Origin: Oikopleura dioica
Taxonomy: Eukaryota > Animalia > Chordata
Length of the DNA stretch: 64,000 nt
Direction: 5' to 3'
NCBI GenBank assembly: GCA_907165135.1
Contig: OU015566.1
Location: 7,564,001 to 7,628,000, forward strand
The notes beneath the pieces were generated by a model. It saw nothing but the letters and a program-made list of their open reading frames with translations, searched no databases and was not told where the DNA came from. Both the position numbers and the translations under genes were made by a program. Below, one piece after another: positions 20,081 through 25,794 of this stretch; positions within the stretch are counted from its first letter, which is position 1; every line of letters starts with the position of its first letter.

Positions 20081-23000
20081 TTACTTTGATAAAGGTAGAA
20101 GGGCAAATGAACTCATGAGGAACATCTTGGAGAAATAGTTTTTTGAAATAATGTTATCATTCGTAACTTCCTCTGCAACTGAACAAAAGCTGCCAGGAAT
20201 GCTGCTGAGAAATTCATCAATAATCTTTTCTTCTCGTTCTGATATCATCAAAAAACTAATGTACAGTATTTTCGATGGCTGAGGTAAAGAAGCGTGTCAT
20301 GGTGCGAGGGTGGGAGTTGAGTCGTCGTGGAGTTCGTGCTATTTCTTCTTATTTCATATTTTATTAAATATTCTAGAGGTTCGTTTCTTCTTCCAAGAGA
20401 TACGTTTTTACCATTCCCTTTCCTTTTACAAATATTTCACCACGTGGCACCCAGGAAAATCTACAAATATTAGTAAAGAACTGTTAAATTTGGCAAAAGT
20501 ACTTTAATTTGTCTAGATTGCGCTTGTTTCCAATGAGGCAGAGCTGGTTCATGAGGTCTTCGGTGATCTGGATTTTGTCGCACAGCCCTGTACTGTCCAT
20601 TCGCGACGCAACGTTAACTGTATTTCCCCAAATATCGAAGAGCAACTTTTCGATGCCCATCACTCCAGCGGTTACTTCCCCGCAGTGGGCGCCAATTCGT
20701 AATTTCCACCTTGAAAGCAATTTTAGACAAAGAAAGAAAAACATTTTTTCATACTCGAATGAAATCATATTCTGACTGAATGCTTCGACGGTCTTCTGGA
20801 TGTCAATAAGAAATTCGATCATTCGCTCAATCGGATGGATGTCGACAGTTTCGTCGTGCTCGTCTTCTGACCATCTAAGACCCGCAGCGCCCATATAAGT
20901 TGAACTCGTAGTCTAAGAAAATTTTAAAAAAGAAAAGACGGCCGATAAATACCTTGATCTTGTCGATGCTGGTTCGATAGACATCCTTGTCGAGCAAATC
21001 GTCGATGTCGGAGATCAGTTCACTCAGAACACTAGAAATGATAAACTTTAAAAGTTGACAGGGAATCGAATTGGTACCGGATAAATTCAGTGCCCGAGTT
21101 GAACTGCTCTTCGTACATTTCTTGAAAGTTTGAGACGGAAGCGAAAAAGACGCCAACCATTTCGTGGTTTTTGGAATAATGTTTCTAGCAATGAAATAAC
21201 CGATAATAATACTTTTGACTCTTACTCTGTCGCGGACGCAGGAGATAACATGCTCGGGGATGACGTTGTTTAATAGCGTCTTGGCAAAGTCGCGTTGTTC
21301 CTTTACCCGCTGTCGTTTCAGTTTAGCGATGATATTTGCCTAATGAGCCGATTGCAAAAGGCGAGAAAAGGGGGCATTTACCTTGAAATTGAGACGATGC
21401 GAAACCTCGTAGGCACGGTTTTCGAAGAACAGCAATAAGGAAAGCAAGAATAAGGCCATGATCCATTGGAAATAATCAGTATTCAATAAACAGTACTTTG
21501 AAATAGTTGATAAGCGGGCTAATTAACAATCTGTGGATTACCATGTACAAAGAGGAAAGGCAGAATCCGACAATAATGATGATTAAGGCGATAGTAGTGC
21601 GAAGGTTTGAAGAAAGATTGGAAAAGTTGATTGAGTGGAGCGCGCAGACAGCCAAGATGATCATCAAGTATTCGTGTGCGCCTGGAGGATAGTGTCCGGT
21701 GAGGGAGGGGTCGGGAGAGGATGAACTGTTGAGGTTGGAATCGTTTGGTTGGGAGCAATGCTCTTGCGTAGCGGCAACAATAGCTAGAATGATGATTTAT
21801 TGATGGAAATTTTGCACAGAAAAATCTTTTCTCGGAGATTTTTTCTATGTAGTACATAGTATGTACTTCTCATTAGAAAATTGTTTTCCAGACAATTTTG
21901 CGATCAACTAACCTGGTAAGCATGGAAAAATAAGAAAGAGAGCTCCTAAAGTATGCCTGTATTGCCAGGACATGAGAAGGTCAATAGAAGGGCGCAAATT
22001 CTTCGCCTTGCAGAGAACCAAATAGACGATTGAAAGAACAACGCAGGCGATGAAAACGGCGAGCGCTGCCGGGTGGAAGCCAATTGCTACTGTGACGGCT
22101 GCGAAGAGCACGCTCTGGGAGATGATGCTCAAGATGATGTCGCGGCACCAACGGTCGATGGGAAATGTATTTTCAGCGAGGGAGGATGCGCTTGCGCTGA
22201 AGGAAGCATTCTCGACTTCGAAACCTTGGCGGTAAAGGTTTTCTAGGCGCAAGCTACTTCTAAAAACGGCTTTTTGATGGAGTAAAGGGGTAAAATACCT
22301 TTGGTTAGGAGTCGAACTAACAGCGAATTCGTCATTTTCAAGCTCCTTTTGGACATCTTTGAAATTGAGCGTGACGGCATTCATTAGTCCTCCACCGAGC
22401 TCTCCTCGCCGGTGGAAGTACTCTTCGGCTTTGCCGCCATGAGTTTGATCCTGATTTTCAGTTTGTTTGTGAATCAGAGCAATGGCCGTCGTCCGTGGGG
22501 CTTCCCCATATCTCCCTTCACCATTTTCAAGCTAGAATCAACAAATCAACTTTTTGATTTTGTTCACCGATTTGGTAAATTTCTGCAAACTTTCACGAAA
22601 TGATAGAGCGGAGAAATTTGTTGAAAAACAAATTAATTCGATCCCGATTTTAATATAAATGGATAATCATATAATGTTTTATCCGTGCAGCGGTGTTTTT
22701 CCAGAAGCGGAATATTCCTAAAGTGGAACTCGCTATTCTGGTGGATTTGCGTGAATTACAGAATTAGCAAGGATTGAAAAGGATTAATGATTTACCAGGG
22801 ATACCTGGCAGTCCTCCTCTCGGAGGGCCAGCTTTGAACCATCATAATCGTGGGTAGATCCGTCGACTGTTACAAGGTTCAGGCGATGAGTAGGATAATA
22901 CAGCGCTCTTACTGTATTACAAATAAAAAATATAAAACAATGAAAACGTCCACTATTGCAGGCTCATTCAATTTTAACCTTTCCTGTCGAATTGAGCTCA

Positions 23001-25794
23001 TCGAAGCGCTCGTTTTCGAAGAAATTCTCAGGCAGGGTTTCAATTTAATGTGCCAAGGCTATCCCATAATTTCTACATGGCTGTCCGAATCTAGTACTTT
23101 GACACCTTTTTGGAATCGTCTTGACAAGATCTGTCGATTTATTGAGCGAAAATTTAAAAAAAAATTGATGGCTTCGGACTTACATGGACTTGAAAAATGC
23201 ACTAGAAAACACAAAAACCGATAAAAACTCGGAAATGAGTTTGAAATCTAAAAATCGGCCTCGATAAAACAAAAGATCTTTTTATGAGGATTCTTAAAAG
23301 GTATGATAGTACTAGGCTGGCACCTATAGTTTTCCCGCAAAACGAGAAGCAAATCTGGCACATTAAATTGAAACCGGACCTCAGGTTCGCGAACGAGCCA
23401 GGTAGTCTCGGCATATTCCGGATGCTCATGGTCCTCGAAGAGTTGGTGGAATCGAGCGCGCAGAGACACTTTCGAATTGGAATTCTCAGTTTCTTCGAAA
23501 AGCCGGTTCCAATCTTCCACTACGCCGCGGGAGTAATGGGCGCTCGGATTTGCATCTTCGAATTCAAGCCCTGCACCTTTCAAATATCCCCTTGTGCAGC
23601 CAGAAATGTGAACTCGGCCGGGAATGCCCGTCGATTCCAACTTATTTGCCCAGGTTACATCTAAAAGAAATCTGGTTGAAAGCAAATAAATCAAAGTCGA
23701 AATGTTACCTTGTCCGTACACATCAAACTTGTATCGTTTACTGCCCACAATGGCGTAAATCACCCGGCCTGAGTGGATACCGACGCGCATATCGACAATT
23801 TGCCCTTCGAAGTCTGGATTGGCTGCTTTGTGTCTTCTAGCGCTTTCGAGGGCGACATCGTTTTCTTGGCAGAAAACTAAAAGATTTCATAAGAAGATAT
23901 TTTCTCGTTCGTCCAAAAGAGTACCTTTGATTGTCTTGCAGATCTTGAGCCCCATGACGACGCAGTTGTAGGCATGATCTTCATCAGGCTCTGGGCACCC
24001 AGCGACACAATAATAACAATCGCCCAAGATTGCGACTTTCTCGCACTTCATCGAATAGCAAAGTTTGTCGAATCGACCGAAGAGATCGTTGAGCATGTTG
24101 ACGAGTCTGGACGCTTCCAAGCCCGAGCTCAGTCTCGTGAAGCCGACAATATCGGCAAAAAGGATGGACACTTTGTCCTGGAGAGAGATATCACCCGCAA
24201 TGTGTCGCATCAGCTTGTCGTTGCTCGTGCTGATCACGCACTTGTCGGCGAGCGTTTTTGGCATGACGGAGTTGAGCAGCATTTGCGTCGTTTTCATGTC
24301 GCTCTCGTATTTCTGGTTGGCGCGGACGACTTCGCAGACGTTTTCGTACGACTTCATCAGATCGTCTTTCGTTTGGCGAAAGTGCTTGAGGCAGATGAGG
24401 TGCACAACGATTTGGAGGCATATTTCGGACGCGATGTACTTCAACTTGTCGGTGTGAGCTACGAAGAAATCCATTTTTAACTGACTTTGTAATGAAAACT
24501 TACCGTTGTAATGGAGAATAAATTCGAAGAGGATTGAATTGCACATTCCAATAATAAATAATTTGATCGTAGAGACTCTAATGGACGTATAAAGAACCAG
24601 GGTAACTTCGATATGTAGAATCCACGAAGCAAGAACATGAGGGAGTTGAGATTGAGAGCCGAGATTCGAAGTGAAAAGATCAGTCTAATGTGCGGGCTCA
24701 CCTTGTGCAAATGTAAAAAACGAGTGTGTCAGATTTTTAACAGCTCTTTAAATATTTGAAAGTGGATAAATGAAAATCACACGTATTCAAAATGAGCGTT
24801 GGTTGTATCATTTGCGAGCCCGGCCGAAACAGAGAAGAGGGTAAAGAGAAGAGTTCCGACCAAGATCAAGTGATGAGAGGAGGGACGAGATCGAACGCCA
24901 TTTGCGCTTTGTTTCCACCAGAAGGTTGCGGCGATTAGGAAGCCAATTATTAGTACTTTTTGAAGGATATACATTTGGCTAGCTATTTAGGGAATCAAAC
25001 CCTTCTTCAAAAATAGATGCAAGAGTAAATCCATTCCTAAGAGTACTGAGGCATAAATAATCTGCCCCAAAAAGGAGCATGATTTTGAATCGACTCCGCT
25101 TTCGTCATCCAATTGACAGTACACATCAGCAGCCTCAGCATAGATGTAATAAGCTTTTGCGCCGGTTCAGCAGATTATACTCGAGCATGAATAAATTTAA
25201 TTTTCAAAAGTCCGATTTTCGACAGAATTAGCTGAACGGGGAAATGGAAGGTGAGTCGGCCACCCAGACCCGATATTCAAAAATATAACAGCTGCACGCT
25301 CTCTGCCACCATAAGGCGGTGTATCAATCATCACCCAAGGGGGGAACTGGCTGTTATCAGCATGGAAATCATCACAGTACAGAGCAAATCGGCCATTATA
25401 GAATTTGGGATAACATACGACCAAAAATGGAATTCATTGAAAAACAACTGAATTTTATTATTTGATATTAGGATAACGAATCCATTGATATATTTGACTT
25501 CAAGCAACATATATATTATAAAATCACATTCTTAATATTTAATTTGAAATTCATTTTCGGCAAGTATATGGCCCATATAATATGGGCAAGAATACTACGA
25601 TAAAAATGATATGTGAGAATGCACGAGATTCGCAGTAAATTATTAACCCTAATTCTTAGTAAATGCTGCGCTCCAGCCATCCCTGAATTTGAGCACTTTT
25701 CATAGGATCTTGAATGTAGATGCGAGCACCTGGCAGGAGACAAGCTGCACGATGCATCCTGCATCTCCTTGTTACCGGCTGAAGGCCTCCCCAT
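20081..25794 (-). CDS. ADCY9: Transmembrane adenylyl cyclase, type 9-like (multi-exon; both ends approximate)
   Basis: C1: SILFADIVGFT...LNDLFGRFDKLC...LGDCYYCVAGCPEP..DHAY and MRVGIHSG. C2: LRIGAHCGEVTAGVMG..KLLFDIWGNTVNVASRMDSTG. Hydrophobic exons lie between them. Confidence 0.9.
23033..23379. mobile_element. hAT-like MITE forming an entire ADCY9 intron (introner-like)
   Basis: 20-bp inverted repeat GGTTTCAATTTAATGTGCCA at both ends. Direct repeat CTCAGG at 23027-23032 and 23380-23385. Confidence 0.75.

Follow-up and report, generated by a model that had tools for sequence, protein, structure and literature searches.

A very recent exonic MITE insertion in the AC9-like adenylate cyclase gene of Oikopleura dioica, a probable introner-type intron at birth

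The host gene

The window considered here, i.e. the whole analysed stretch of 64,000 nucleotides (contig OU015566.1, positions 7,564,001 to 7,628,000), lies on chr1, an autosomal scaffold of 14,533,022 bp, in an assembly totalling 64.28 Mb in 19 pieces. This assembly, OKI2018_I69, represents the Okinawan Oikopleura dioica and derives from a single adult male (PMC8008620). On its minus strand the window encodes a membrane adenylate cyclase that is AC9-like, with a MITE inserted in one of the coding exons. The ORFs flanking the insertion carry the Guanylate_cyc domain, as detected with Pfam, and the best solved relative of the protein is adenylate cyclase 9 (residues 391-482, E 3e-37), followed by AC8 (2e-34), in agreement with the ADCY9-type identity given in the initial annotation.

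The insertion falls in the middle of the gene, within the C1b linker, with the second membrane block and the C2 domain both encoded downstream of it. The upstream coding exon (23380..23660, minus strand) encodes the end of the C1 cyclase domain and the linker; an RNA contig covers 23380-23619, and the exon start near 23660 was deduced from the acceptor TTTTAG. On the other side of the element lie the remaining 43 nt of the same ancestral exon (NFFENERFDELNST; 22984..23026, minus strand), delimited by an RNA contig and by splice-site sequences, and then a non-canonical GA..AG intron at 22867-22983 on the minus strand (ACAG/GAAAGG...TAACAG/TCG, the slash marking exon-intron boundaries), which is seen in a metatranscriptome contig with a joint ambiguous by 4 letters. 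Introns of the GA-AG type, along with other odd forms, are common in Oikopleura dioica (PMC7072748). Further downstream on the same strand are a GT..AG intron (22532-22795; RNA contigs), a membrane block (21908-22384; ORF reading) and the exons of the C2 cyclase domain (20484..21160), recognized from the sequence as ORFs with VFFASVSNFQEMY and IGAHCGEVTAGVMG...DIWGNTVNVASRMDSTG; a Pfam search with one short C2 exon gave no match. A placement of the insertion in the C-terminal tail was considered and rejected: the stop found 20 codons downstream is bypassed by the GA..AG intron. As read from these exons, retention of the element in the message would cost the cyclase its second half, including the C2 domain.

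Anatomy of the insertion

Read across the site on the minus strand, the sequence is ...GAACCTGAG/GTCCGGTTTCAATTTAATGTGCCA ... TGGCACATTAAATTGAAACCCTGCCTGAG/AATTTCTTC. The element is a 348-bp MITE of the group termed subfamily A below (23032..23379, minus strand), whose edges were taken from a four-copy alignment in which the homology ends at the TSD. On the gene strand it starts with GTCCGGTTTC and finishes with GAAACCCTGC. Its TIR core is an exact 20-nt inverted match between 23356..23375 (the element 5' end on the gene strand) and 23036..23055 (the element 3' end), for which 0.01 matches were expected by chance; two matches were obtained in 0 of 100 shuffles. The element is bracketed by two minus-strand copies of the target, CTGAG on the gene strand (CTCAG on the plus strand). 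The upstream copy (23380..23384), identified by family comparison, forms the final five exon bases and yields AG/GT at the donor; the downstream copy (23027..23031), identified by family comparison and from the empty site described below, would provide with its AG the 3' splice site of a putative GT..AG intron. This putative intron (23027..23379, minus strand) is 353 nt long, comprising the 348-bp element and one 5-bp TSD copy, and is the segment skipped by a joint from 23026 to 23380. Taking it out restores ...WLVREPE/NFFENERF... in phase 0, as checked locally at the site; if it were retained, translation would run through 44 extra codons before reaching a stop. The initial annotation had anticipated this anatomy in several respects that hold up, namely that the removable unit is a transposon plus one TSD copy, that GT lies at the TIR edge with AG coming from the duplicated target (as seen in the family alignment and the flanks), and that the frame is regained without a scar.

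The predicted RNA fold of the 353-nt unit has an energy of -101 kcal/mol (z -5.8) and is closed by a terminal stem of 21 bp, outside which 4 nt on the 5' side and 9 nt on the 3' side stay unpaired. The cyclase-locus copy has weak splice signals, with GTCCGG as donor, GAG as acceptor (a G at -3) and no pyrimidine tract. By comparison, nearby introns with RNA support use GTAAAT or GTTAGT at the donor and TAG or CAG at the acceptor. A perfect GTAAGT is also present inside the element (window 23160-23175, minus strand); of the four subfamily-A copies, only those in AC9 and CLU have it, and it could be either a competing donor or a chance occurrence.

The MITE family and its termini

A genome search for the 20-bp TIR, as recommended in the initial annotation, recovered 12 TIR ends that fit the pattern, 18 DNA matches and about 16 family members, with sister copies in exons of CLU, LCMT and OATP genes. 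Three subfamilies were recognized: A, which includes the cyclase copy (four full copies, 94-99% identity), B (five copies, 98-99% identity) and C (four copies of about 520 bp, 97.5-98.5% identity). The further relatives are one 619-bp element, some solo ends and two ~4-kb elements with the same termini. The cyclase-locus copy and the CLU-locus copy are 99.1% identical. The three subfamilies are young, and under the explanation favoured below the family is a small and currently active one.

Full-length copies are flanked by a 5-bp repeat of the form CYNAG (CTGAG, CTCAG, CTTAG, CTAAG, CCAAG, CCCAG), with CTAGG found once. The repeat is 5 bp in each of the 14 full-length TSD pairs, 11 of which are exact and three of which show one mismatch or a 1-bp indel. 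Within subfamily A, all four copies, each in an unrelated flank, have ...CTNAG/GTCCGG on one side and GCAGGG on the other, such that the termini are independent of the flank (GCAGGGTTTC at one end and GTCCGGTTTC at the other). In subfamilies B and C and in the ~4-kb elements GTGGAC, GTGGGT or GTGCGC is found at both ends. The element ends start with GT in all copies, except that subfamily A has GC on one side. The constancy of the GTCC end at unrelated loci, together with the GT at the ends of the sister subfamilies, indicates that the GT is borne by the element and that the TSD is 5 bp long. A 5-bp CYNAG duplication is the simplest reading; formally, the empty site and the copy sequences fit either this or a 3-bp YNA duplication in a C_G target, with GG..CC termini.

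The window contains another MITE at 743-1055, to which the element had originally been likened. It is unrelated: it has a different TIR, of 35 nt and 97% complementary (CAGGGTTCGGTAATTTGAGC...), and has only CAGGGTT in common with the cyclase-locus element.

Sister copies in coding exons

Three further copies interrupt coding exons with identifiable domains. One, in the GT..CAG orientation (G000:C2:7910126-7910472), lies in a single-copy gene on the X-specific scaffold and splits the CLU Pfam profile exactly between positions 130 and 131, the two parts spanning positions 1-130 and 131-225. A second, in the GC..TAG orientation (G000:C1:7544929-7545274, on the 17.09-Mb scaffold), lies in an LCMT-like methyltransferase, where LCM profile positions 53-171 are matched and the ORF then runs on in frame. 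The third, in the GT..TAG orientation (G000:C5:744102-744625, on the 16.16-Mb scaffold), lies in an OATP transporter, with the profile matched at positions 193-240 ahead of the element and at 272-401 beyond it. In all three the frame is regained once the element and one TSD copy are removed, as checked locally. Beyond these there are two more probable exonic cases, bringing the exonic copies to four confirmed with Pfam and about six probable among the about 16 family members; at 4/4 of the confirmed ones the gene-strand TSD ends in AG. By a rough estimate this exonic fraction is near the coding share of the compact genome, and exonic copies seem not to have been purged.

The CLU copy is particularly informative. 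The gene that it interrupts is the sole CLU-domain gene in the genome, and retention of the element leads to a stop after 44 codons. It is located on the XSR scaffold (12,959,145 bp), which is haploid in males, and the assembly was made from one adult male (PMC8008620). That the only CLU gene is split on a hemizygous scaffold in an animal that nonetheless reached maturity argues that this copy, near-identical to that in the cyclase, is removed from RNA.

An empty allele and the transcripts at the site

The reads surveyed comprised two metatranscriptomes, one single-cell RNA run and one DNA run of another sample (X6), the organism code of which differs from that of the other runs. X6 covers 30/30 bins, introns included, at a depth of about 76-93. 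A contig of X6 DNA joins 23026 to 23380 at a depth of 76, the same as that of the single-copy flanks, with 41 letters on its short side; the empty site holds a single CTGAG copy, and the joint is ambiguous by 6 letters. The MITE sequence itself is found in X6 at a several-fold higher depth and runs into other flanks. An exact empty site in DNA at single-copy depth indicates that the insertion is polymorphic and recent. This substantiates the earlier proposal of a recent gain, for which a search for samples lacking the insertion had been suggested. The empty X6 haplotype differs from the reference by many flanking SNPs.

The same joint, from 23026 to 23380, occurs in a contig of a wild metatranscriptome (X11) that extends across the GA..AG intron and was the only RNA contig to cross the site. 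At two SNPs, 23446 G>A and 23575 A>G, it agrees with the empty X6 haplotype, and it is for that reason most likely a transcript of the empty allele, giving no evidence of splicing. The RNA junction 23380/23026 that the initial annotation proposed as a check does exist as a sequence, but on the haplotype that lacks the element. The X11 contig indicates that the uninterrupted sequence of the empty allele is expressed as one exon. The single-cell RNA run of the species has zero reads at the site.

Separately, loose ends in X6 at window positions 23030 and 23384-23385 represent MITE copies with flanks that match no reference copy, and one X6 MITE flank resembles the CLU locus. The unmatched flanks suggest ongoing insertion polymorphism, and the CLU insertion is possibly shared with the X6 sample.

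Long elements and superfamily affinities

The two ~4-kb elements, L031 (G000:C3:2399712-2403671, TSD CTAAG) and L032 (G000:C4:3500545-3504582, TSD CCAAG), carry the TIRs of the family and contain conserved multi-exon coding segments, together of ~690 codons, with 66-85% amino-acid identity between them. In both, tandem and inverted repeats occupy a central block (2191-2755 in L031 and 2066-2793 in L032). We regard these elements as candidate autonomous parents. Pfam searches with their ORFs recovered no match, including none to any transposase model or to a RAG1-like domain. A word-index protein search with a long-element ORF recovered only the Oikopleura dioica gene model chr1.g924, and an exhaustive HMMER search recovered five strong matches, three of them identified as Oidioi.mRNA.OKI2018_I69 models, and two weak metagenome proteins. 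A related annotated model (P0004) has stretches reading ...TTDY..., ...VQSDGA... and ...SGHGKGEIDS..., which, when compared by eye, form a possible D-D-D/E arrangement. Language-model neighbours of the long-element protein carry DUF7869; a search of the long elements with the DUF7869 profile gave no match, and a literature search returned no mention of this domain. The AlphaFold model of the long-element protein (mean pLDDT 48.6) was too poor for a structure search.

Members of the hAT superfamily have an 8-bp TSD and symmetric YARNG termini; Transib elements have a 5-bp TSD, CACWRTG-type termini and a RAG1-like transposase. The hAT assignment made initially was rejected: the ends read GCAGGG/GTCCGG or GTGG../GTGC.., neither an 8-bp TSD nor symmetric YARNG termini are present, and the ~4-kb elements have no Pfam transposase. 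Transib, with which the 5-bp TSD agrees, was likewise rejected, given the GTGGAC/GTGGGT termini and the lack of a RAG1-like domain. A DDE_Tnp_4-type transposase of PIF/Harbinger, with its Myb-like partner, was sought in the ~4-kb ORFs with Pfam and none was found. A metagenome scan for the 20-nt TIR core returned two stretches (L041 and L042); the match in L041 (984-1003) is exact over the 20 nt, has no element context and looks like chance.

A proposed mechanism and its alternatives

The explanation we favour, with fair but not high confidence, is that a MITE of a family built for scarless GT/GC..AG removal has very recently inserted in the exon, i.e. that the cyclase locus holds an introner at birth. 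A non-autonomous cut-and-paste MITE entered a CTGAG site in a coding exon of the AC9-like gene very recently. Any insertion of this family, on either strand, reads exon-CTNAG/GT (or GC)...element...C-CTNAG/exon, such that the 5' splice site would come from the first two bases of the element (GT, or GC in the other subfamily-A orientation) and the duplicated target would supply both the exonic AG preceding the donor and the 3' AG. The long terminal stem may bring the two splice sites together, and splicing from the GT to the AG of the TSD would drop the element with one TSD copy and exactly restore the original message. The insertion, its TSD, the end structure of the family, the empty allele and the place of the element in an exon are observed directly, and from these we infer that the spliceosome removes the cyclase-locus copy in this manner. 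Among the features that characterize introners, near-identical copies are seen in unrelated genes (cyclase, CLU, LCMT, OATP), the splice sites are drawn from the element or the TSD, removal restores the coding sequence and presence is allele-specific; as to splicing, the joint seen in RNA (X11) is on the empty-allele haplotype, and the site has no cover in the RNA run of the species.

More tentatively, and with rather less confidence than we place in the core proposal, the family as a whole might constitute an active chordate introner system with presence/absence alleles and its own candidate autonomous parent encoding a D..D..D/E-like protein. In such a system, the elements would be splice-competent in both orientations through GT or GC, the terminal stem would define the intron over weak signals, and the copy in the hemizygous CLU gene would be a newborn intron that has to be spliced.

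The locus could instead represent a plain disruptive insertion, a null allele that is recent and rare, is spliced poorly or not at all, and is tolerated because the reference male is heterozygous for it, with the GT..AG frame a by-product of the ends and target of the family. The element is missing from both X6 DNA and the wild RNA haplotype, its GTCCGG donor and GAG acceptor are weak, its 99.1% identity to its sister marks it as very young, with little time for selection to have acted, and the autosomal nature of chr1 makes heterozygous carriage by the reference male possible. These points lend the null allele some plausibility, but it is set against four Pfam-confirmed and about six probable exonic copies among about 16, near the rough coding share, and against a copy that splits the sole CLU gene on a hemizygous, X-specific scaffold in an adult male. 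On the whole, we consider it the less likely reading.

Considerably less probable is that the empty allele is not ancestral and arose by precise excision, the insertion then being older than it appears. Some cut-and-paste transposon families do excise precisely, but many flanking SNPs separate the empty haplotype from the reference, and the 99.1% sister identity, taken with these SNPs, fits a young insertion on one haplotype. The scenario of the initial annotation, in which a hAT MITE generated an 8-bp TSD (CCTGAGAA) whose upstream AA then mutated to GT as a post-insertion splice-site optimization, is scarcely tenable: CAGGG at one end does resemble hAT termini, but GTCC is intrinsic to the family end in 4/4 subfamily-A copies, standing at four unrelated loci beside the TSDs CTGAG, CTCAG, CTTAG and CTAAG, the duplication is 5 bp in the 14 full-length pairs and at the empty site (formally 3 there), and GTGG occurs at both ends in other subfamilies.

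Comparison with known systems

As a proposed introner at birth, the cyclase insertion has several points of reference. Both the introner concept and Oikopleura as a carrier are already established; the present case offers clear anatomy and an empty allele. Introns turn over fast in Oikopleura and, to our knowledge, intron gain has rarely been seen with the filled and empty alleles both extant.

As regards the transposon itself, the target of the maize PIF element is CWCTTAGWG, of which TTA is duplicated. The palindromic core C-TNA-G of the targets described here is like that of maize PIF, and the termini can be read as GG...CC; unlike in PIF/Harbinger, the ~4-kb ORFs match no Pfam transposase, and the duplication is most simply of 5 bp.

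In the introner IE1 of Micromonas pusilla the introner gives the 5' gt or gc and the TSD gives the 3' ag (Huff, Zilberman and Roy 2016, as described in PMC11282704). As far as that description goes, the two systems are alike in having a short element with TIRs, a short TSD, gt or gc depending on orientation, an ag borne by the TSD and scarless removal, the last being putative in the family described here. They differ in that IE1 is present in thousands of copies, as opposed to about 16 here, its sequence is unrelated and the host here is a chordate animal; moreover, the present family has a 5-bp CYNAG TSD (or 3-bp YNA inside C_G) and candidate 4-kb parents, and its splicing is predicted from structure and coding frame.

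Closer in taxonomic terms, Oikopleura is one of the few animals given as introner carriers by Gozashti et al. 2022, with the Oikopleura dioica tip flagged (PMC9860276). In the entries of their Dataset S01, the Oikopleura families, which are of the same genus, are likewise multi-copy intron families with mainly GT donors (PMC9860276). They differ in that the introns are about 195-215 nt long, come from an Arctic metagenome-assembled genome and have their TSD and TIR entered as '?' in that dataset (PMC9860276, Dataset S01), whereas the family described here is of 338-524 bp, has a defined TIR and TSD, and belongs to the Okinawa lineage; this comparison is one of descriptions. A further larvacean tunicate, Fritillaria borealis, has MITE-derived non-canonical introns (Henriet et al. 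2019, as described in PMC11282704). As reported there, those introns also have TIRs and TSDs, and the exon-side TSD helps to form the splice site; they are, however, mostly AG-AC or AG-AT, in contrast to the canonical GT-AG, or GC-AG, of the present family.

With the cyclase locus and its sister copies in CLU, LCMT and OATP, it can be asked in a simple animal setting whether fresh exonic transposons splice at once, and what share each of the hairpin formed by the termini, the GT or GC of the element and the AG of the TSD has in this. Set beside these known systems, its value lies in being a well-defined and testable example rather than a new principle.
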